Of a DNA stretch of 64,000 bases, positions 54,556-64,000 are shown piece by piece; within the stretch, counting starts at the first letter, position 1, and every line of letters starts with the position of its first letter. The stretch is from the sequence record OR413575.1; one strand, written 5' to 3'. Position numbers and translations under genes: made by a program. The notes beneath the pieces are model-generated. The model ran no database searches and was not told where the DNA came from. It saw only the letters and a program-made list of their open reading frames with translations.

Positions 54556-54990
54556 ATGGAACTTCATCTGGTAATTATCGACGGTCGCTTCGATCGCATC
54601 GATTTATCCAGGGATGGAGTCCTTCTGTTTACGATTACAAGATACCAATCCAGAGGATTAGGTTTAGTTGCTTGTGTCAACGGTAGATTAGAATATCTTT
54701 ATATCTACCGCCATAAAGCCGCTGTGCGTCAGGAAGTAAGATTCCGTTATGGCTTGGACGTCATATCCTCTCAGTTACGTAAACAAGGAAAGGAATTCAA
54801 AGGACTGTTCTGGGGCTCCCCAGTAGCGACAGATTATTTAAATGATCGCTGGTTCGGAGTAGGTAATACATTGTTAATGAGTCGTAATGGTAGATTATCA
54901 GATCCATTGGAAAATGTACTGGTACGCAACCGATATTACGATATCGACACTGAACCATTGTTACAACATATTCGTACTTGGTTACAGTGA
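54556..54990 (+). CDS. Hypothetical protein
   Basis: 144-aa ORF ending at the bidirectional terminator 55000-55020. Confidence 0.6.
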   Translation: MELHLVIIDGRFDRIDLSRDGVLLFTITRYQSRGLGLVACVNGRLEYLYIYRHKAAVRQEVRFRYGLDVISSQLRKQGKEFKGLFWGSPVATDYLNDRWFGVGNTLLMSRNGRLSDPLENVLVRNRYYDIDTEPLLQHIRTWLQ

Positions 54991-55872: not shown

Positions 55873-55977
55873 ATACCCTCCAGCATGATGTAGTGTGTAA
55901 GAATATTTTTTGAGGCACTACCTGCTTGTTATGTACGAGTAGTGTTACATACGTTTACACCATATAAGAGGTTTATA

Positions 55978-56913
55978 ATGGAAACTAAGAATAAGGTTCG
56001 TATTTATGGCTGCGGCGGTTCCGGTACTAATATCCTGAACCTTCTGATGAAGCAGGATACCAGCAACCTTGCTGCGTTTGATCCTGTATTCGTCGACAGC
56101 TCCGATTCCAACATTGCCGCTGGTTCCAATGTGTACCGTATTAACGGCATGAACGGTGCAGGTAAAGATCGTGAAGTCATGATGGGCCCTGCACGCCGTG
56201 AAGCAACTAACATCCTGGTTCAGCACGAACCATCGGAAGTTAACATTCTCATCTCTTCTGGCGGCGGTGCTACCGGCGCTGTAGTCGCGACTACTCTGGC
56301 CGAAGAAATCTGGGCTCAGGGCAAACGCGTCATCTTCTTCGTTGTGGGTTCTAATGAATCCCTGAAGACTGCGGAGAACACCTCTAAACATCTGCGTACG
56401 CTGAACGGCGTCGCTCGCCAGCATGGTCACGTCTCTGTTGTCTTCTACGACAACAACGGCGACAATACCCGTCGTACTGAGGTTGATCGTTCTATGGTTC
56501 AAGGTCTGCTCGCATTCCTGGATCTGTACAGCGGCAACCACGATGAGCTGGACACCAAAGATGTTGAGAACTGGTTGTTCCTGGAAAAATCAGCTCAGCT
56601 GGAACCACAACTGGTGCTGATGGATATCGACACTTCTCGCGAAAATGCACTGGAGCGTCAGTATCCGATCTCTGTGGCAATCATCCACAGTAAAGCCGAT
56701 GCCGGTAAAGGGACTATCCCTGCCGACTATACTACCGAAGGTTATCGCCGCGACAATAACGACACCTCGCTCTTCTTCTCCATCCATACGGAAGGTCTGA
56801 ACAACATCATGACGGAACTTACCGACGTGATCGGCGGGTTCAAGAAAAGAGCAGTAGCGCGTCAAGCGACAGCTAACCAGGTATTCGGCGGTGGAACTGG
56901 CTGGGATTTATAA
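55978..56913 (+). CDS. phuZ: Phage tubulin PhuZ/TubZ
   Basis: GCGGSGTNI, GAGKDR and SSGGGATGA tubulin/FtsZ GTPase motifs; short C-terminal tail; start ATG 55978. Confidence 0.93.
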   Translation: METKNKVRIYGCGGSGTNILNLLMKQDTSNLAAFDPVFVDSSDSNIAAGSNVYRINGMNGAGKDREVMMGPARREATNILVQHEPSEVNILISSGGGATGAVVATTLAEEIWAQGKRVIFFVVGSNESLKTAENTSKHLRTLNGVARQHGHVSVVFYDNNGDNTRRTEVDRSMVQGLLAFLDLYSGNHDELDTKDVENWLFLEKSAQLEPQLVLMDIDTSRENALERQYPISVAIIHSKADAGKGTIPADYTTEGYRRDNNDTSLFFSIHTEGLNNIMTELTDVIGGFKKRAVARQATANQVFGGGTGWDL

Positions 56914-57011
56914 TGCCTAGCTTTCCATTTGCTCTGGGCAAGAAAGCAATTGCGCGGTTAAACCCTAAGACACTGGCGATCTTACGCCGCCGTTTTAAGG
57001 CGAAACGATAA
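56913..57011 (+). CDS. Candidate 32-aa basic peptide coupled to phuZ
   Basis: TAATG stop/start overlap; MPSFPFALGKKAIARLNPKTLAILRRRFKAKR. Confidence 0.4.
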   Translation: MPSFPFALGKKAIARLNPKTLAILRRRFKAKR

Positions 57012-57273
57012 AAGCTCTTTATATATGAGCGAATATCACCGCCATTGTTGCTAGCTCACTACAATCTGAAACCTAAATCACTCTCTTAAGTGAGAGTTAA
57101 TGGAACACTGGTTTAAATGTACCAGAGGACGAAAAGCCTCTGTGGGAAAGGCAGCGATGATCGCAGCAGAAGAACCACAAGCGAATGGTAGTCTAGCTTA
57201 GCAAGAAAGGGTTGCTCCCTGATCAGCAAGCGTACCCCGGCCCCGGACTCCGTGGGCTGGGCATTATGCTGTC
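56914..57273 (+). ncRNA. Candidate large structured RNA downstream of phuZ
   Basis: Many nested stems, long-range pairs AACCCT/AGGGTT and GCTAG..ACTAC/GTAGTCTAGC, and a terminal hairpin with TTATGCTGTC tail. Confidence 0.5.
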
Positions 57274-57300
57274 ACATCCTCAGAAGTAAAAATATTACGA

Positions 57301-57320
57301 GTATATATTATCCTAGTGAA
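57301..57320 (+). promoter_or_regulatory. Early promoter
   Basis: GTATATATTATCCTAGTGAA preceded by AATATTACGA. Confidence 0.65.
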
Positions 57321-57336
57321 TCGATTAGGAGTGTAT

Positions 57337-57759
57337 ATGAAAGATGATTATGATTATATCATTAATCGACCAAGTTGGTTGAAGTTAGTTATACAGAAGT
57401 CGGAACGTGCAGGCTGTAAGATAGCTGATGTAGAAGACTTCTTAATAGATTTCCTCACGAACTTAGACATTACGTTAATGTCAGATGCGGAGTTTGGTGC
57501 TTACGACGATTATGAGAAGGATTCGTTCCTGGATTCGTTCTTTGATCAGATGTTAGAGAACTATGCTCAAGGATCGGGAAAGACCGTAGACGAAATAGAG
57601 AACTACGAAGCGTTCCTGTTAGATGTATTATGGTCAGGATGTCTGAGACGAATTATAAAGGACTTTGATAATCGTCTGAGTAATGATGAAGGATATGCGA
57701 TTGAGCGTCTTAGGATCCATTCTAAGAAGGTTATAGTGCAATATATCAAGATGTCCTGA
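57337..57759 (+). CDS. Acidic small protein, array member 1
   Basis: N-terminal YII strand, acidic helices, C-terminal IERLRIHSKKVIVQY. Confidence 0.7.
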   Translation: MKDDYDYIINRPSWLKLVIQKSERAGCKIADVEDFLIDFLTNLDITLMSDAEFGAYDDYEKDSFLDSFFDQMLENYAQGSGKTVDEIENYEAFLLDVLWSGCLRRIIKDFDNRLSNDEGYAIERLRIHSKKVIVQYIKMS

Positions 57760-57829
57760 TACTAAAGGGATTAATTTTTACATAAGTACCTCTTCTATGA
57801 CGAGCATGTAAAGGGGGTTTGGGGGTTAT

Positions 57830-58255
57830 ATGGAAGACGATCAATTATTTATAGTAGTACCAAGTAGTAAGCTAGTTCTAGCTCACGAACTAAGTGATAT
57901 GCCTTATCCATTAATGGGTTATTTAGGCGTAGCAATGAAGTTGTGGTATGTAGGAAATGATGACGGGGATAAAATCTTAGACCCGTATATGTTTTCTCAG
58001 ACTGCGGAAATATACGGTTGCTATTACCAAGGAACTTTATTAGAAGACGTTACTAAACGTTGTGATAAAGATGATTTATTCCTATCCGCAATACAAGACT
58101 TTATTTCATACTGGGATGCTAATAACGATCCTTATAAATACCTTTGCGATATCCGTATCTGTCGCAACAAGGTAGTGTTACTGTTCACGGATAAAGAAGA
58201 AGTTGATTACGAGCCGAAGATCGGTTTTGAATCAGGGAGTCAGGAGGTCGTGTAA
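57830..58255 (+). CDS. Acidic small protein, array member 2
   Basis: LFIVVP...LCDIRICRNKVVLLF. Confidence 0.7.
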   Translation: MEDDQLFIVVPSSKLVLAHELSDMPYPLMGYLGVAMKLWYVGNDDGDKILDPYMFSQTAEIYGCYYQGTLLEDVTKRCDKDDLFLSAIQDFISYWDANNDPYKYLCDIRICRNKVVLLFTDKEEVDYEPKIGFESGSQEVV

Positions 58256-58666
58256 ATGTTACCTGACCATAAACTGCTTGTAGTGATAATCGACATAACT
58301 CGCTTACGCAGATATGCTGGGTATTACTGCAAGTTAGAAGAAGAGGACATAGAGGACCTCATCAAGTATAAATTAGTAAAGGACAATTGTGTTATAGTAG
58401 AAGGGTTTGATCACCGGATGGTCACCGAAAACGTAATTGAAGCATTACAGCAAGTACGTTACGAGGGCGGGATAAACATAAGGCTACCAGCAGGAGTAAT
58501 AAGTGTTGAAGCGTTCACGCTCCGACGTAATTCCATCGTGCTCGAATGCTCGGGATGTGGAGGAGAGTTTAACGCTCTTGGTACCGTACGCGATCAAGAT
58601 ACTTACCTACGATCTCGTGTTTACGGAAAAGCTGAGGGCAGACGAAGTCCAAGACGTCGTTATTAG
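58256..58666 (+). CDS. Acidic small protein, array member 3
   Basis: LLVVIID...VEAFTLRRNSIVLEC. Confidence 0.65.
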   Translation: MLPDHKLLVVIIDITRLRRYAGYYCKLEEEDIEDLIKYKLVKDNCVIVEGFDHRMVTENVIEALQQVRYEGGINIRLPAGVISVEAFTLRRNSIVLECSGCGGEFNALGTVRDQDTYLRSRVYGKAEGRRSPRRRY

Positions 58667-59033
58667 CCTTAGCCGAGCTAGAGATACTTTGGAGTCTGAG
58701 GAAGAATATACTTATCGCGAATTAAGTCTATCTGATCGGGCTGAGTATCTCGAACGAGTAGAAGAAATAATGAGTGATTATTATTTCGATAAACTCACAC
58801 GTGGAATGAACGATGATGAAATAACCCCTGAGTTCTTAGATTCGATACAGGGTAAACTCACTAACTGGATGGACATAGCAGAACTGGTCTGTCGAGCTGA
58901 CTTTTTCGATTCCCTTTACAAATTCGTCAATCGTATTGCGCATGAGGATCAACGTTTGGTCGTCATTGGGATTGAAATTCAGAAAAGAAGAGTGATCATT
59001 GATTATGGGTATGGCACTAGTTGTAGATCTTAA
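58503..59033 (+). CDS. Acidic small protein, array member 4
   Basis: LLVPY...VIGIEIQKRRVIIDY; start probably GTG 58557. Confidence 0.65.
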   Translation: MLKRSRSDVIPSCSNARDVEESLTLLVPYAIKILTYDLVFTEKLRADEVQDVVISLSRARDTLESEEEYTYRELSLSDRAEYLERVEEIMSDYYFDKLTRGMNDDEITPEFLDSIQGKLTNWMDIAELVCRADFFDSLYKFVNRIAHEDQRLVVIGIEIQKRRVIIDYGYGTSCRS

Positions 59034-59499
59034 GCGGTTAGTAATGTATGGCGAGTTGTTTATGGAGCGCTTTGCTCGTGACTATCCAGACTACGCAGAC
59101 CGCGTTTCTTTTGATCGCAGTCGCAGGGATGCTTTGCGTGATTACATCTACAATCGTTTCTGGAATCTACTTGGTGAAACAGCTAAATATGACATGGACG
59201 AATTAGAGGAAGATCTTTATCTCGACAAGTTATTTGAAGGCTGGAAACCTGATTGCTGGTATCATGACAGCAATAAAGAATTAGTAGTAGATGATATGGG
59301 GTCGTTTAAGTTTAACGCTGACGTAGTGGAAGAACTGGACGATAAGCTACAAGTTATCATTTCCAAAGAGAGGCTTTACTTAGGGTTTAGCATATTGGAA
59401 ATGGATATAAGTCGTATTGCCTTAACCATAGACATCTATGGTGATTGGCGAGCGCAACAATGGTGCATTGAAAATGACGAGGAATATATCCCAACGTGA
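59005..59499 (+). CDS. Acidic small protein, array member 5
   Basis: LVVDL...ILEMDISRIALTIDIY. Confidence 0.7.
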   Translation: MGMALVVDLKRLVMYGELFMERFARDYPDYADRVSFDRSRRDALRDYIYNRFWNLLGETAKYDMDELEEDLYLDKLFEGWKPDCWYHDSNKELVVDDMGSFKFNADVVEELDDKLQVIISKERLYLGFSILEMDISRIALTIDIYGDWRAQQWCIENDEEYIPT

Positions 59500-59845
59500 A
59501 CCCGTTCACATTGTCCCGCTAGATTGGATAGTTACCTGGTTTATTACCGCGATACAACGGCTGGATGAGGATGCAGCCTACGCGGTTAATGAAAAAGATG
59601 CCATTAGAATAATGATAGCCGATGCAATGCGTATTGATGAACCATGGGTGGAACGTAAGTATATGGAAATCATTAATCAATACGAAGGGTTTGGGATTGA
59701 CAGTGCTGTAATAATGAAGATCCTAAACCGGGGGGTAGAAAAATTAGAGCGTCGGCTTGATAATGCTGGGGTCCGTTGTGGGCCCCGGTATTCTTTTGAC
59801 TGGTATCATGGATCCAGAAACTTATACATTTACGAGGGGATGTGA
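59438..59845 (+). CDS. Small protein, array member 6
   Basis: VHIVPL...YSFDWYHGSRNLYIY; start uncertain. Confidence 0.6.
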   Translation: MVIGERNNGALKMTRNISQREPVHIVPLDWIVTWFITAIQRLDEDAAYAVNEKDAIRIMIADAMRIDEPWVERKYMEIINQYEGFGIDSAVIMKILNRGVEKLERRLDNAGVRCGPRYSFDWYHGSRNLYIYEGM

Positions 59846-60228
59846 TGATGTACATGATAGATATAAGGAGGAAGTCTAAACGGTTATTAGAGATGTCTAA
59901 TACAGCTAAGCAAGTATACGGTATGGAATTCAACGAGTTTTGTCGATTAGCCTGTATATCTTCTTTAGCTGTTGAAGTTACGCATTTAGACAGTAAACGT
60001 AATCATTATGCAACTGATATGAGTACGTTGAACTACATACGCGATGAAATTTTAAATCATTTAGGAGATGATTATGAAGATAAAGAATACCGTGATCTAA
60101 CGATAATGGTAAGTGTAGCAGGAAACGAAATCCGTAGAGCGACATCCATTATCGATCTACCTAACGAGGAGCTAAGAAACCTAGACGTCAAAGCAGATTT
60201 CTTACGCGGACTAATTTATGCGAGATGA
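59842..60228 (+). CDS. Small protein, array member 7
   Basis: YMIDI...LRNLDVKADFLRGLIY. Confidence 0.7.
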   Translation: MMMYMIDIRRKSKRLLEMSNTAKQVYGMEFNEFCRLACISSLAVEVTHLDSKRNHYATDMSTLNYIRDEILNHLGDDYEDKEYRDLTIMVSVAGNEIRRATSIIDLPNEELRNLDVKADFLRGLIYAR

Positions 60229-60574
60229 AACATATTTGTTATTACCGATTAATCGTCGTTTGCACAGGTATCTCGCCGAAGTTAGGGGAGGTATGTTCGG
60301 AGAACAGTTATTGTCGATGGTACTTACCGGTTTTCTACAGAACATGCTTGTACACGAGTTTGACCTGAAAAAGCATTTGAACGACATTGATTATATCGAC
60401 GGTGTATATGGAAGTGAAGCGCTTGAATTTCGACGTGAGGCATCTATAGCCATTACACGTATGACTATTCGTTACCGTAACCATTTCGATACGAAAAAGG
60501 TTAAAGGTATTAATATTTATAGAGCAACGTTTTCGAAAACAGCGTTGCGGTTTGTATACGAGGTTATATCATGA
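60218..60574 (+). CDS. Small protein, array member 8
   Basis: YLLLPI...IYRATFSKTALRFVY. Confidence 0.7.
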   Translation: MRDETYLLLPINRRLHRYLAEVRGGMFGEQLLSMVLTGFLQNMLVHEFDLKKHLNDIDYIDGVYGSEALEFRREASIAITRMTIRYRNHFDTKKVKGINIYRATFSKTALRFVYEVIS

Positions 60575-61053
60575 ATGGTATAGAAGCAACTTATATCATC
60601 CCAGCCTCAGGATTAAGAGGATTGAAACCTGAGGAGTTCTTTAAAGGGAATTTTGATTTTCTGGACTCTGGTTTTGTAATTGAAACCGCTGTTCAAATGT
60701 ACTTGGATTATTTGATTGATGGTGAGGACGATAACTGGCAATCTGCAGCAGAAGATGCAGTGTTCCGTGAATATATTGGAACTATTAAGTCTATTGCTAA
60801 AGAGATTGTATTCAGAGATAAATCTCCAAGGACAGCGATGGAGAGAGGTAACGGATTATTGGCCGCATCTGACTTGGTCGATAAGTTCATTAACGATATA
60901 ACCAATCATATATCATCCGTGAGTACGTATATCTCTAATTTACCCACTGCGTCTGATTTACAGGAACTCGTTTACCTTACGGAAGGCGAGCTCATTGTAC
61001 AGAACGCATATTTACGCGGGAAGAACATACGGTTTCGTATTGTGGAGGTTTGA
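60571..61053 (+). CDS. Acidic small protein, array member 9
   Basis: YIIPA...VQNAYLRGKNIRFRI. Confidence 0.7.
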   Translation: MNGIEATYIIPASGLRGLKPEEFFKGNFDFLDSGFVIETAVQMYLDYLIDGEDDNWQSAAEDAVFREYIGTIKSIAKEIVFRDKSPRTAMERGNGLLAASDLVDKFINDITNHISSVSTYISNLPTASDLQELVYLTEGELIVQNAYLRGKNIRFRIVEV

Positions 61054-61421
61054 TGGAACCTGACTATGTCGTTCTACCCACGCGGGATTTTATAGACAAA
61101 GTCGGAGATATCTTTAACTATGTACCTGAAACGTTTAACTTCAATGAGGAAATGTTTATAGGCTTTGCAATCGATTCAGTATTTAATGATACGTGGTCAG
61201 ACACACGAGAATTTATAATGAATTGTTTTTCTCATGCCCGTACCACTACCGATGAAGAACGTGAAATGATCCTGGACATTGTCGAGAATAAGTTTATCGA
61301 CGTGTCTGATTCACTCAGGTATAGTTACGATCAATATCGAAGATTATTCAGACCCAGGTGGCGTGTAGATCTGGTTAAGATTAATTGGGCGAGTAAATCA
61401 CTGGTGCTGAAACTATTATGA
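61050..61421 (+). CDS. Acidic small protein, array member 10
   Basis: YVVLPT...LVKINWASKSLVLKL. Confidence 0.7.
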   Translation: MMEPDYVVLPTRDFIDKVGDIFNYVPETFNFNEEMFIGFAIDSVFNDTWSDTREFIMNCFSHARTTTDEEREMILDIVENKFIDVSDSLRYSYDQYRRLFRPRWRVDLVKINWASKSLVLKLL

Positions 61422-61735
61422 ACTCAGTAATATGTATCCAAAGTCAAAGTGTCGGTGTATTGGCGAGTCGTATGCAAGGATTCCTTGTCCGCAATGATCT
61501 ACCCACTACACCTGACTTTTTACAAAAGACCTTCACTGAATTGTTAGAGATCGACTTCATGACATTGAACCCTGTTCAGTACATGCAGTTTTTCCGCGAC
61601 TACCCGCAATCGGATAAGTTATATTTCCGTATTGCGCAACATATCCTCGATGCGTTAGGTGAAGATGTTTCTGTCCGTGCTGTTCAGGTATTGTCTTTAT
61701 CTGGCCCGAATATCACGGTTAGTATCGATCATTAA
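61418..61735 (+). CDS. Small protein, array member 11
   Basis: VICIQ...VQVLSLSGPNITVSI. Confidence 0.65.
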   Translation: MNSVICIQSQSVGVLASRMQGFLVRNDLPTTPDFLQKTFTELLEIDFMTLNPVQYMQFFRDYPQSDKLYFRIAQHILDALGEDVSVRAVQVLSLSGPNITVSIDH

Positions 61736-61745
61736 GGGGAGCCTT

Positions 61746-62162
61746 ATGGAAATCCTGGGCAAGTTCGATTTAGGCGACACTGTCACGTTTCAATTACAAT
61801 CTGGAGCGATGGCGATTATTCCTGATTCGTTCACTCGTTGTGTAGTTAAGTCACGAGTGCTGGCTGAAGATGTAGGTCGTTTCGATATCGATCCTTATAG
61901 CCTTCACCAGTTAGTTTATCCGACACTGACGCCTAACAGCTGTCCGTCTGATCCGGATAAGTATAAGTGGCTAATTATTAAAACACTGAGCGGTAGTACA
62001 TTAGCTATCGGCGAACCATGGGTCAACGTGGATACTATTGAAGCTGTTACGAACACAGGCTTAACTATCTATTGCAGTTCATCTCCGAAGAACGGATTGA
62101 ACTTAGCAAGACAGGTACTTACAGCCAATGGGTTCGTGGTAGCATCTATTGTCCCCGATTGA
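61746..62162 (+). CDS. Conserved phiKZ-like hypothetical protein
   Basis: FDLGDTVTFQL...IGEPWVN pattern recalled just upstream of the DNA polymerase in phiKZ-like phages; terminator at 62173-62196. Confidence 0.65.
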   Translation: MEILGKFDLGDTVTFQLQSGAMAIIPDSFTRCVVKSRVLAEDVGRFDIDPYSLHQLVYPTLTPNSCPSDPDKYKWLIIKTLSGSTLAIGEPWVNVDTIEAVTNTGLTIYCSSSPKNGLNLARQVLTANGFVVASIVPD

Positions 62163-62273
62163 TTCATGTCATAAAGGAGGGCTCGAGCCCTCCTTTATTT
62201 TTTTGTCTCGTTTATTTTTGAGTAATTAACCCATTAGTATAGAGAGAATAAATTTAACCAAAAAGGTTTCAAC

Positions 62274-64000
62274 ATGGCCGCGTTAGTTAATAACCCGTTT
62301 AACCGAAAGGCCTCCGATTATGTCCGTGATATTAACGTAATCGATGGGGCGATAAATCAGTTCGCGATTATGATATCGCGGAGTTACAAGATCAGTTATA
62401 AGGAAGCACGCGACTACGTTGTAGATGAACTGAAGAACGGTTCTAAACGTTTCCGTGATCCTATCATGCGTTACCTCCAACAAGACGAGTTTGAAGACCG
62501 TCATCCGGAGGAAATGAAGTTCAGCCAATATATCCGTAGTGCTGAACGCGATAAGTTGTTAATGGCACCTACGTTTACTCAGATCATTCCACCTGATCGT
62601 AAAGAGTCCATGCTGTCCAGCTATATCAAGGTCAACTTGGCAAAACGTAATGCCGAAAAGAAAGCACAGCTTCAAGCTGCGAACCATGGCGAGAAGTTCA
62701 AAGAGTCTCTCCATAAGAACAACCAGAACAACAAGAAAATCCTGAACAATGCTATATCAGGAAACCATCGTTCTATCCACAGTATTCTGTACGATCGTCC
62801 GGTACACCCGATATTGACATCTTGTTGTCGTATAGCGAACGGATCTGCTAACTCAAACAATGATAGACTGTTGATGGGTAGTCGACATTACTACACGCCG
62901 GATACAGTATTGGCTAACATTGCCTCTATTATAGAGATAACTGATTGGCCGTTGGTAAGACAGGCGGTGGATAAACATAATCTACACAAGCCTACAGTAG
63001 AAGAAACATTAGCCGTTATTAAGCGGTCGACTGACTTATACTGGGTATCGGAACATGCGGGTGGTAACAAACACATCGTCAGGTTTGTAGAATCATTGGA
63101 TGAGTACGAACGAGCTGCTGTTTGTTACATGGGCGACTTGTACCACCTAGCTCAGTTCAACGACAGTGTGATTCGTGAGATTATAGATGCTCTGGTTAAG
63201 GAACCAACTGTTCGTGTCGACAATGACTTTGAATGGTTGAACCATGTTGATGAAGATACTCAGGCGCAGATCAAGGTACGATTCCCTGAGATCGTTGGTA
63301 AAGAACACTTCTGGCATGATGACGTAAAAGCAAGAGATGACTATTGGAAGGTCGGCTCAATGGCTTGTCAGATTTATCAGACGTTAGATAAATATGCCGA
63401 CGTGATTAATGCGTTCCTGATGTCTAAGAACGTCCCGTTCTTAATCAGCGATTTCCCATCAGCAATTCGTCGTGCAGGCGTAGGTTCAGATACTGACTCC
63501 GCAATCTTTACAGTACAGGATTGGGCAATCTGGTATAACGGTAACGATGATGTTACCTACGAAAACATTTTGTTATCGGAAGCCATGGCGTTTATCGTAT
63601 CTGAAACAACCACTCACAACCTGGCGACAATGACAGTTAACATAGGCGTAACTGATGAGAAGGAAATCTTCCGCCTGTCAATGAAGAACGAGTATTTATT
63701 CCCTGTCTTTATGTTAACGTCGCGTGCTAAGCACTATGCCGCATTACAGAAGGTACAAGAAGGAGTAATCTTCGACAAGGCTAAGTTGGAGAAGAAAGGA
63801 GTTGAGTTGATTGCATCTAACTCACCGGAAGGTGTGCGTAATGACTTGGATAGATTGATTCTGGATGCCTTACATAAGCAGGAACGAGGTGAACGGATAT
63901 CGCTACACGAGTACTTAGTGACTGTAGCCGAGTGGGAGCACCGTATATTCGACTCAATTTCAGCAGGTGAAACGATTTACCTGAAAGCAGCCCGTGTAAA
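62274..64000 (+). CDS. DNA polymerase family B, polymerase-domain subunit (phiKZ gp50-like); runs off window end
   Basis: Absent from the ORF track. Manual translation gives MAALVNNPFNRKASDYVRDIN, with motif B-like NQNNKKILNNAISG and motif C RRAGVGSDTDSAIF. Confidence 0.88.
   Translation, partial: MAALVNNPFNRKASDYVRDINVIDGAINQFAIMISRSYKISYKEARDYVVDELKNGSKRFRDPIMRYLQQDEFEDRHPEEMKFSQYIRSAERDKLLMAPTFTQIIPPDRKESMLSSYIKVNLAKRNAEKKAQLQAANHGEKFKESLHKNNQNNKKILNNAISGNHRSIHSILYDRPVHPILTSCCRIANGSANSNNDRLLMGSRHYYTPDTVLANIASIIEITDWPLVRQAVDKHNLHKPTVEETLAVIKRSTDLYWVSEHAGGNKHIVRFVESLDEYERAAVCYMGDLYHLAQFNDSVIREIIDALVKEPTVRVDNDFEWLNHVDEDTQAQIKVRFPEIVGKEHFWHDDVKARDDYWKVGSMACQIYQTLDKYADVINAFLMSKNVPFLISDFPSAIRRAGVGSDTDSAIFTVQDWAIWYNGNDDVTYENILLSEAMAFIVSETTTHNLATMTVNIGVTDEKEIFRLSMKNEYLFPVFMLTSRAKHYAALQKVQEGVIFDKAKLEKKGVELIASNSPEGVRNDLDRLILDALHKQERGERISLHEYLVTVAEWEHRIFDSISAGETIYLKAARV

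Follow-up and report, generated by a model that had tools for sequence, protein, structure and literature searches.

This study concerns a tandem array of small genes in a 64,000-nucleotide stretch of record OR413575.1, referred to here as the window. Over positions 55900-62200, the window matches Salmonella phage SPLA10 (OR413575.1) at 100% identity. SPLA10 is a Salmonella jumbo phage that forms a nucleus, a chimallivirus with a 210-kb genome. The array is flanked upstream by the PhuZ gene (55978-56913) and downstream by the gene for a divergent family-B DNA polymerase (PF20286), which starts at 62274. The eleven consecutive ORFs announced in a preliminary description of this DNA are all present (11 of 11, o01 to o11), and they lie on the + strand, as do the promoter motif, o12 and the terminator described below. 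They encode proteins of 105-176 aa when the longest ORF is taken; if the likeliest starts are used, the range is about 105-162 aa.

The first two genes, o01 (57337..57759; 140 aa, net charge -10, dN/dS 0.04) and o02 (57830..58255; 141 aa, net charge -14, dN/dS 0.22), encode acidic proteins; for each, an ortholog was found in contig S85, the closest relative, and nowhere else. They are separated by a 70-nt gap, and o02 abuts o03 (58256..58666; 136 aa, net charge +2), for which orthologs were found in the PCH45 clade, in PhiEaH1 (gp033, hhalign probability 99.9) and, weakly, in Moabite. The final ~35 residues of o03 are encoded where the gene runs into the start of o04, and they lack conservation in PCH45. 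The start of o04 (58503..59033; 176 aa as longest ORF) is ambiguous between GTG 58503 and GTG 58557; the latter is the likely one and gives a product of 158 aa. Its N-terminal strand is kept in the same frame in PCH45 and S85, and the GenBank version of the gene is truncated to the last 87 aa. The most conserved array member is o05 (59011..59499; 162 aa). It is followed by o06 (59474..59845; 123 aa, dN/dS 0.06), whose ORF opens at 59438; this gene is absent from the OR413575.1 annotation and shows a weak link to a Moabite array ORF (hhalign probability 45). The next gene, o07 (59845..60228; 127 aa), is a probable ortholog of PhiEaH1 gp029, as judged from a profile alignment over 111 columns (hhalign probability 61.5, E 7.8e-5). 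The remaining members are o08 (60218..60574; 118 aa, net charge +4, dN/dS 0.16), the acidic o09 (60571..61053; 160 aa, dN/dS 0.15), o10 (61053..61421; 122 aa) and, last in the array, o11 (61418..61735; 105 aa, dN/dS 0.09), which occupies the position of Imp4 (gp48) in phiKZ. All junctions from o03/o04 to o10/o11 are overlaps, ranging from 1 to about 110-164 nt. The genes are indeed mostly stop/start-overlapping, as previously described, and the array is translationally coupled.

After a 10-nt gap, o11 is followed by o12 (61746..62162; 138 aa), a homologue of phiKZ gp49 that matches PF20287 (SH3DP), for which the Pfam wording is 'SH3 fold domain associated with phage DNA polymerases'. Given that this match (E 7.7e-28, 97 bits) exceeds the Pfam gathering cut-off of 25, o12 is outside the eleven-member paralog family; it belongs to the same operon as the array. 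Homologues of o12 were found in 71 phage records.

A promoter-like motif (TATATATTAT CCT AGTGA) lies at 57302..57319, 18 nt before the ATG of o01. The motif TATATATYANNNNRGTGA occurs nine times in the window, always on the + strand, where 0.21 copies are expected, and the aligned sites have a common upstream CTAAC-like box. One copy is located upstream of o01 and none within the array, which supports the single promoter claimed previously. The promoter block upstream of o01 is invariant in five phages (SPLA10, S85, PCH45, S19 and S51). AT-rich promoters of this type have been ascribed to early vRNAP promoters of jumbo phages, and by this general rule the array promoter would be an early one (PMC7598289). 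A strong intrinsic terminator-like hairpin, with a 12-bp stem followed by a T run, is found at 62171..62198, after o12 and before the polymerase gene. With one promoter motif, coupled genes and a terminator after o12, o01-o12 constitute a single operon.

In comparisons with a relative that is 70-88% identical, dN/dS was 0.04-0.25 in ten of the eleven array genes; for o05, dN was 0.20 and no ratio is given because dS is saturated. The eleven ORFs are thus real genes under purifying selection, and Pfam and PHROG searches with their products returned no match.

In all nucleus-forming phages examined, the array is located after the PhuZ gene or a DUF7484 gene and before the SH3DP and DNA polymerase genes. 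The order PhuZ, array, SH3DP and polymerase was observed in PCH45, PhiEaH1, Moabite, FBKp24, Eowyn, RAY, Proteus phage 10, Goslar, PhiPA3 and phiKZ. Array orthologs are collinear, slot by slot, between phages, and the array comprises about 6 to 11 genes among chimalliviruses. The nine members with PCH45 orthologs (o03-o11) share 28-53% identity with them, against 55-77% for core genes; the array slots diverge much faster than the adjacent core genes.

With regard to sequence features common to the eleven proteins, the preliminary description had proposed a hydrophobic N-terminal strand and a C-terminal hairpin-like pattern in all of them, as well as a mostly acidic character. The acidic character is confirmed: nine of the eleven are net negative, six of these between -7 and -17, the exceptions being o03 and o08. 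The N-terminal strand can be recognized in all eleven by reading, but a regular expression retrieved it in only eight; across 16 phages, this expression matched 53% of 146 array proteins and 20% of 46 controls. Hydrophobic alternation over the 16 C-terminal residues was likewise enriched (61% of array proteins versus 13% of controls), whereas a stricter two-strand C-terminal expression performed no better than on shuffled sequences. The very low pairwise identity reported before was borne out by sequence comparison. When Smith-Waterman scores were tested against shuffled sequences, p<=0.05 was reached by 5 of the 55 pairs, compared with 2.8 expected, the best pairs being o01/o06 (z 4.3) and o04/o05 (z 3.9). 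Mutual profile-profile similarity, whose absence had been named beforehand as one half of what would refute a common family, was not found: the hhalign median was 12.3 for the eleven and 12.2 for reversed controls. Neither sequence nor profile similarity among the eleven array proteins showed an overall excess over the null.

Two of the eleven members were modelled with AF2. In the model of o05 (pLDDT 94.1, pTM 0.85), a strand is followed by helices and a hairpin, with an additional helix at the C-terminus, and the model of o10 (pLDDT 85.5, pTM 0.78) comprises a strand (E5-9), four helices and a hairpin (E105-111/E116-121). The two models have one topology in common, in which an N-terminal strand precedes about four helices and a C-terminal hairpin closes the order. 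In Foldseek searches of BFVD, a structure library covering all viruses, the o10 model matched PhiEaH1 gp027 (TM 0.81, E 2e-4) and gp029 (W8CZK8, probability 0.96), as well as PhiEaH1 gp030 and gp031, Eowyn gp076 and gp083 and Desertfox gp213; it thus retrieved four different PhiEaH1 array genes. It also matched orthologs of o05 with probabilities of 0.7-0.84, at TM-scores of only 0.37-0.51 and for a simple fold. About 19 targets were common to the o10 and o05 searches. The matches of both models were almost all chimallivirus array proteins, and every match that could be mapped falls within the syntenic array. No counterpart was found in the PDB with either model. Among the other members, o07 is linked to the fold through its probable ortholog PhiEaH1 gp029 and o06 is linked weakly, while the case for the remaining seven rests on the terminal sequence patterns. 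The claim of an ancient paralog family with one fold and diversified surfaces is therefore supported by the shared topology and targets of o05 and o10, but not at the level of profile alignments, which stay at the null. For the nine members beyond o05 and o10 we infer the same fold, and we consider it quite probable that a single fold and a common origin unite most of the eleven.

The o05 model also matched a class of larger array proteins of 300-500 aa, comprising phiKZ gp43, PhiPA3 gp039, Goslar gp237 and RAY gp211. PhiPA3 gp039 was matched with E 1.1e-3, probability 1.0 and TMq 0.59, and proteins of Proteus phage 10 (502-aa), Goslar (325-aa) and Desertfox (429-aa) were matched as well. They are encoded by the first large genes in the array. 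In contrast to them, SPLA10 and its enterobacterial relatives have the domain alone, at about 160 aa, whereas elsewhere it lies within a protein two to three times larger, and sequence similarity between o05 and the PhiPA3 gp039 class was not detected.

The preliminary description had placed phiKZ import factors between the tubulin and polymerase genes. Published work confirms this: orf47 (Imp2) and orf48 (Imp4) of phiKZ are both cargo-specific import factors (10.1101/2024.03.27.586873), and they are located in the syntenic array just before gp49 and the polymerase. Imp2 is needed for the nuclear import of a specific cargo and is itself imported through Imp1, as is known for phiKZ and PhiPA3 only (10.1101/2024.03.27.586873); the functions of Imp2 and Imp4 are also covered in 10.64898/2026.09.21.753271. 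The SPLA10 array has the same location as Imp2, upstream of gp49/SH3DP and the DNA polymerase. The o10 model matched SL2 gp312 (A0A2D1GRC6) with a Foldseek probability of 0.99, a TMq of 0.61 and a modest E of 1.2e-2, and SL2 gp312 is a close, near-identical ortholog of Imp2 that shares a 90% cluster with PHIKZ047. The match of o10 with PhiPA3 gp044 was weaker (probability 0.57), and for o05 the probabilities were 0.63 with SL2 gp312 and 0.33 with PhiPA3 gp044. In the two modelled members, o05 and o10 of the eleven, the predicted structures thus point to the Imp2 fold.

Imp2 and Imp4 resemble the array members in being small proteins encoded in the same syntenic block upstream of gp49/SH3DP, and Imp4 has a run of hydrophobic residues at its N-terminus and hydrophobic alternation at its C-terminus, as array members do. 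They differ in that Imp2 is a protein of 178 aa with an N-terminal extension of about 28 residues, in that SPLA10 has eleven members compared with about six or seven in phiKZ, and in that sequence and profile similarity between the SPLA10 array and phiKZ Imp2/Imp4 is undetectable. In the literature, Imp2 and Imp4 are described as restricted to Pseudomonas phages. A tblastn search with PhiPA3 gp044 returned 63 records, all of them Pseudomonas phages. When the Imp2 pair was aligned with each of the eleven families, hhalign gave a probability of 0.9 at best, and the phiKZ and PhiPA3 array proteins showed no profile link to the SPLA10 array. Imp4 (PHIKZ048) had no profile similarity to the array and was absent from the best 50 Foldseek hits of o05 and o10.

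SPLA10 encodes homologs of the core importer as well. The product of its CDS 199972-201456 (record positions) shares 57% identity with PCH45 gp211, and that of CDS 193309-193929 shares 63% with PCH45 gp204; these PCH45 genes are named PicA/Imp1 and Imp3, respectively (10.64898/2025.12.19.695335). Both homologs are found downstream of the array, at most about 14 kb away.

Taken together, the explanation we favour is that the array is an old, rapidly diverging paralog family with the Imp2 fold that is conserved throughout the Chimalliviridae and whose members plausibly license specific cargo for import through PicA/Imp1; as a whole we give this explanation about an even chance. What the data show directly is how the operon is built, that the array genes are under purifying selection and keep their syntenic place, that o05 and o10 have a common fold and that there is a structural match to Imp2. 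The models suggest that the fold is chimallivirus-specific, with Imp2 as a relative, and the eleven proteins appear to share it; they are therefore candidate import adaptors. Given the functions of Imp2 and Imp4, their syntenic location and the match of o10 with Imp2, an import-adaptor role of the SPLA10 array genes is a reasonable inference, as is every statement on function in this phage, and that at least one array member acts in cargo-specific nuclear import is a serious possibility, though slightly short of even. In such a mechanism, the N-terminal beta-strand would pair with the C-terminal beta-hairpin and pack on about four helices, each paralog keeping this strand/hairpin core and differing in its helical surface. 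This surface may bind one cargo, a phage or host protein, which would then be brought to the chimallin shell and presented at its PicA/Imp1 import site, and the adaptor itself may enter the nucleus together with its cargo. The likeness to eukaryotic importin-alpha/karyopherin adaptors, in which a set of adaptors brings different cargoes to one gate, is a working analogy only, as these have neither a structural nor an evolutionary relation to the phage array. In phage import, folded surfaces are recognised through PicA/Imp1, and a protein lattice is crossed rather than a membrane pore (PMC12908238).

The proteins could instead share a fold and serve as accessory or regulatory replication partners of SH3DP and the divergent family-B polymerase. 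The linkage of array, SH3DP and polymerase, invariant in every chimallivirus examined, and the co-transcription of the array with SH3DP are consistent with such a role. Nevertheless, replisome partners are usually conserved, whereas the array diverges faster than all adjacent core genes and varies in size from about 6 to 11 genes, and import is the process in which Imp2 and Imp4, the two functionally characterised members, take part (10.1101/2024.03.27.586873); we regard a replication role as unlikely. It is rather improbable that the array is an early host-takeover or anti-defence battery, for instance of acidic DNA or protein mimics, each neutralising a host factor of its own without involvement of the nucleus. 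The promoter, of the type ascribed to early vRNAP promoters (PMC7598289), the strongly acidic character of most of the proteins, and the quick divergence and variable copy number expected in an arms race would all suit it. However, the slots are collinear across Salmonella, Serratia, Erwinia, Klebsiella and Pseudomonas phages, which better fits phage-internal partners, the fold has no match to a known anti-defence protein in the PDB, and Pfam and PHROG are equally silent; the nucleic-acid-mimic and anti-defence readings of the preliminary description found no specific support. Finally, that the eleven are unrelated ORFans, with terminal strands and hairpins that are convergent or generic in small alpha/beta proteins and models that are alike by chance, agrees with the sequence and profile tests, the strict hairpin expression and the modest TM-scores between members, but is very improbable because both models, searched against an all-virus library, retrieved almost exclusively chimallivirus array proteins and nothing from the PDB, all mapped matches lie in the syntenic array, and the terminal motifs are enriched over adjacent genes.

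For annotation, the analysis adds one unannotated gene (o06), one truncated gene (o04) and, for the phage group concerned, a strong promoter consensus. If the array is a family-wide set of Imp2-like proteins, it would also define a new fold for structural study. Of the factors that choose proteins for entry into the phage nucleus, only PicA/Imp1, Imp3 and a small number of phiKZ-specific adaptors are known. It is conceivable, albeit doubtful, that throughout the Chimalliviridae cargo is recognized by one tandem, fast-evolving family with an Imp2-like fold at a fixed locus beside the polymerase, each paralog licensing a different cargo through PicA/Imp1, in which case Imp2 and Imp4 would be two members of a set of 6-11 adaptors per phage rather than novelties of Pseudomonas phages. 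Sequence searches would have missed such adaptors because their divergence is beyond profile detection, and the array would provide a defined list of candidate adaptors for enterobacterial chimalliviruses, SPLA10, PCH45, Goslar and RAY among them.

The eleven small plus-strand ORFs described previously (o01-o11, 57337-61735) were confirmed to form a tandem array. The window is 100% identical to Salmonella phage SPLA10 (OR413575.1, 210 kb), a chimallivirus whose chimallin gene lies just past the window edge. Twelve plus-strand ORFs separate PhuZ (55978-56913) from a divergent family-B DNA polymerase (PF20286, starting at 62274), and the first eleven constitute the array. The twelfth, o12 (61746-62162, plus strand), encodes an SH3DP protein (PF20287, E 7.7e-28) homologous to phiKZ gp49, with homologs in 71 phage records, and is outside the paralog family. 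Pfam and PHROGs scans returned no match for any of the eleven array proteins. Neighbouring array genes abut or overlap, the single exception being a 70-nt gap 3' of o01. The eleven ORFs are genes and belong to one operon. In comparison with a relative sharing 69-88% protein identity (a Logan contig, locus L017), dN/dS was 0.04-0.25 for 10 of the 11; for o05, which had a dN of 0.20, saturation of dS precluded a ratio.

Several of these genes are incompletely annotated. In OR413575.1, o06 (59438-59845) has no CDS and the annotation of o04 (58503-59033) is limited to its C-terminal 87 aa; in the record of Serratia phage PCH45 (L002:12326-12790), the o03 ortholog is unannotated and the o06 ortholog truncated. 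Conserved N-terminal strands lie 5' of the starts given. The 3' end of o03 and the 5' end of o04 share 110-164 nt, read in different frames (58503-58666). Because PCH45 conserves the o04 frame here but not the tail of o03, the final ~35 residues of o03 look incidental. Upstream of the DUF7484 gene, a 144-aa ORF (54556-54990) likewise opens with a hydrophobic stretch and then D, lacks the C-terminal pattern of the array and matches phrog_38442 (unknown function); this ORF could be an additional relative lying outside the array.

The 325-nt leader of the operon ends in the block TATATATTAT-CCT-AGTGA (57302-57319), 18 nt 5' of the o01 ATG, which does not vary across five phages whose array proteins are just 28-53% identical. 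The motif TATATATYANNNNRGTGA occurs nine times on the plus strand of the window (4703, 6718, 13365, 20707, 37327, 40398, 42770, 46825 and 57302) and never on the minus strand, against an expectation of 0.21. Every copy has a CTAAC-like box upstream and an RBS and ATG 20-30 nt downstream. This strong promoter-like consensus reads as a CTAAC-like box, ~10 nt, TATATATTAC, 3-4 nt and AGTGAA. The array itself contains no copy, and o12 is followed by a hairpin with a 12-bp stem and a T run. A sigma-70 promoter scan scored below chance, and an Rfam scan of operon and leader gave no match. As, according to a review, RNAP-encoding jumbo phages each have a conserved AT-rich motif of ~10 nt 5' of their early operons (PMC7598289), the putative promoter at 57302 may reasonably be regarded as early.

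The long non-coding leader after PhuZ (57012-57300), without an Rfam match, carries a GC-rich hairpin immediately 5' of the promoter block. At the equivalent position, PCH45-like phages have a hairpin with a T9 run, which probably terminates the PhuZ unit. Another GC-rich hairpin (59762-59792), of 14 bp and with a weak T tract, lies within o06 over sequence encoding a conserved part of the protein, and is probably a coincidence.

The preliminary description regarded the eleven proteins as a paralog family with one fold, and named unrelated folds together with a lack of mutual profile-profile similarity as what would speak against it. The second of these was observed, as no such similarity was detected: in an all-against-all hhalign comparison of the eleven family alignments, the median score was 12.3, compared with 12.2 for reversed controls, and the probability never exceeded 4. 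The same families did not match the array proteins of phiKZ and PhiPA3 by hhalign. BLASTP and phmmer among o01-o11 gave marginal pairs only (o01/o06, o04/o05 and o07/o08). Iterated searches, including jackhmmer, with the members and 16 related arrays recovered orthologs alone and never joined two slots, a slot being one gene position in the array. In window-shuffled Smith-Waterman comparisons, 5 of 55 pairs reached p<=0.05 against 2.8 expected, with no overall excess.

Structures were predicted for two of the eleven members, o10 (9 sequences) and o05 (15 sequences, full HMMER scan). The o10 model (pLDDT 85.5, pTM 0.78) comprises E5-9, H11-23, H32-44, H51-56, H67-94, E105-111 and E116-121, and the o05 model (pLDDT 94.1, pTM 0.85) has the same order of elements, to which a small hairpin insertion and a helix at the C-terminus are added. 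The architecture guessed earlier, an N-terminal strand followed by helices and a C-terminal hairpin, is seen in both models.

Foldseek searches of BFVD with o10 returned mostly small uncharacterised jumbo-phage proteins, 16 of the named matches being from phages that carry the block in this analysis. The top match was PhiEaH1 W8D040 (TM 0.81, E 2e-4); W8CZK8, W8D0F2 and W8CZD1 of the same phage were matched too. By exact-sequence look-up these are gp027, gp029, gp031 and gp030, respectively, four separate genes of the PhiEaH1 array. Array genes Eowyn gp076, Eowyn gp083 and Desertfox gp213 were matched as well, and the o10 model matched o05 orthologs with probabilities of 0.7-0.84 (TMq 0.37-0.51). 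The o05 model first found its own orthologs and then large first array genes of other clades, namely PhiPA3 gp039, which is homologous to phiKZ gp43 (probability 1.0, E 1.1e-3), and proteins of Proteus phage 10 (502 aa), Goslar (325 aa) and Desertfox (429 aa); many of its lower matches were small proteins shared with the o10 list. Against the PDB, the best probability was 0.14 with TM <0.27, and profile searches of PDB sequences were empty. The o05-like domain is free-standing in the group of SPLA10, PCH45, Moabite, FBKp24 and PhiEaH1; in phiKZ-like phages, Goslar, RAY and Proteus phage 10 it sits within a 325-502-aa protein heading the array (L010:4454-5467, L011:5004-5981, L014:3645-4934 and L016:3731-5239).

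Terminal sequence patterns were compared in 146 array proteins from 16 phages and 46 neighbouring proteins used as controls. Of the array proteins, 53% have a run of hydrophobic residues and then D or P among residues 1-35, compared with 20% of neighbours, and 61% versus 13% show hydrophobic alternation over the final 16 positions. Both features are combined in 47/146 versus 1/46, with p-values that are generous because orthologs in the sample are not independent. A strict regular expression for a two-strand hairpin was not enriched over shuffles. Chou-Fasman profiles, crude and too noisy for use, called N-terminal strands in most families. In the o10 family, conservation is highest in the N-terminal strand and C-terminal hairpin. 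The paralog reading is supported by predicted structure in the tested members, o05 and o10, and by terminal patterns in the others; no sequence statistic speaks for it.

The closest named relative is PCH45 (PhuZ identity 55-58%), which has collinear orthologs of o03-o12. Three Logan contigs provided further orthologs, one of them carrying all eleven members. The block, consisting of a minus-strand DUF7484 gene, PhuZ, 6-11 small genes, SH3DP and polymerase, was found in PhiEaH1, Moabite, FBKp24, KpLz-2_45, Eowyn, RAY, Proteus phage 10 and Goslar. In PhiPA3 and phiKZ, a DUF7484-like gene (gp037 and gp42, respectively) is followed by the array, SH3DP and polymerase, with PhuZ further upstream; in pEa_SNUABM_54, PhuZ is elsewhere in the genome. 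The o03 slot corresponds to PhiEaH1 gp033, the o05 slot to PhiEaH1 gp031, Moabite gp030 and FBKp24 gp322, the o07 slot to PhiEaH1 gp029 (hhalign probability 61.5, 111 columns) and, weakly, the o06 slot to a Moabite ORF. As slots can be traced between clades, the array is old and has been passed on slot by slot. The nine members with orthologs in PCH45 (o03-o11) are 28-53% identical to them, compared with 55-77% for PhuZ, SH3DP, chimallin, nvRNAP, Imp3, ChmC and PicA.

With the SH3DP alignment as query, scans of viral and metagenome contigs together yielded only three loci with two distinct sequences, phage 2050HW and one short contig that came up in both. Proteins of the array with 94% or 100% identity to those of PCH45 and SPLA10 (P0001, P0007 and P0065) have been deposited under Salmonella enterica isolates of serovars Oslo and Muenchen; their contigs are 205-214 kb long, which indicates that bacterial assemblies contain whole phage genomes of this group.

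With regard to function, import adaptors or anti-defence proteins had been suggested. JADA, the Avs5 activator, was considered but rejected, as it is phiKZ gp124, at another locus. In phiKZ, import of one nuclear protein depends on orf47 (Imp2), which itself enters via Imp1, and import of host TopA depends on orf48 (Imp4); both were reported as conserved in Pseudomonas phages only (10.1101/2024.03.27.586873). Later work terms them cargo-specific adaptors (10.64898/2026.09.21.753271), and a transposon study placed them among conserved genes without disruptive insertions (PMC12676376). gp47 and gp48 are the final two array genes of phiKZ, immediately 5' of gp49/SH3DP and the polymerase. The ninth BFVD match of o10 (probability 0.99, E 1.2e-2, TMq 0.61) was A0A2D1GRC6, the entry for SL2 gp312, which shares a 90% cluster with PHIKZ047; PhiPA3 gp044, named in the paper as an Imp2 homolog, matched with a probability of 0.57. 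Imp4 has a hydrophobic run near its N-terminus, and hydrophobic residues alternate at its C-terminal end.

A PCH45 transposon study (10.64898/2025.12.19.695335) names gp211 as PicA/Imp1 and gp204 as Imp3, and reports that neither PhuZ (gp187) nor the SH3 protein (gp198) is essential; from these numbers and the annotated gene order, the array corresponds to PCH45 gp189/190-gp197. The SPLA10 homologs of gp211 and gp204 (57% and 63% identity) lie within ~14 kb downstream of the array. A literature search confined to sources outside subscription journals found no paper treating the array as one fold family or extending Imp2 beyond Pseudomonas phages. Since import factors are the only proteins of this fold and locus with a characterised function, the leading hypothesis for SPLA10 is that its array members may serve as import adaptors of the phage nucleus.
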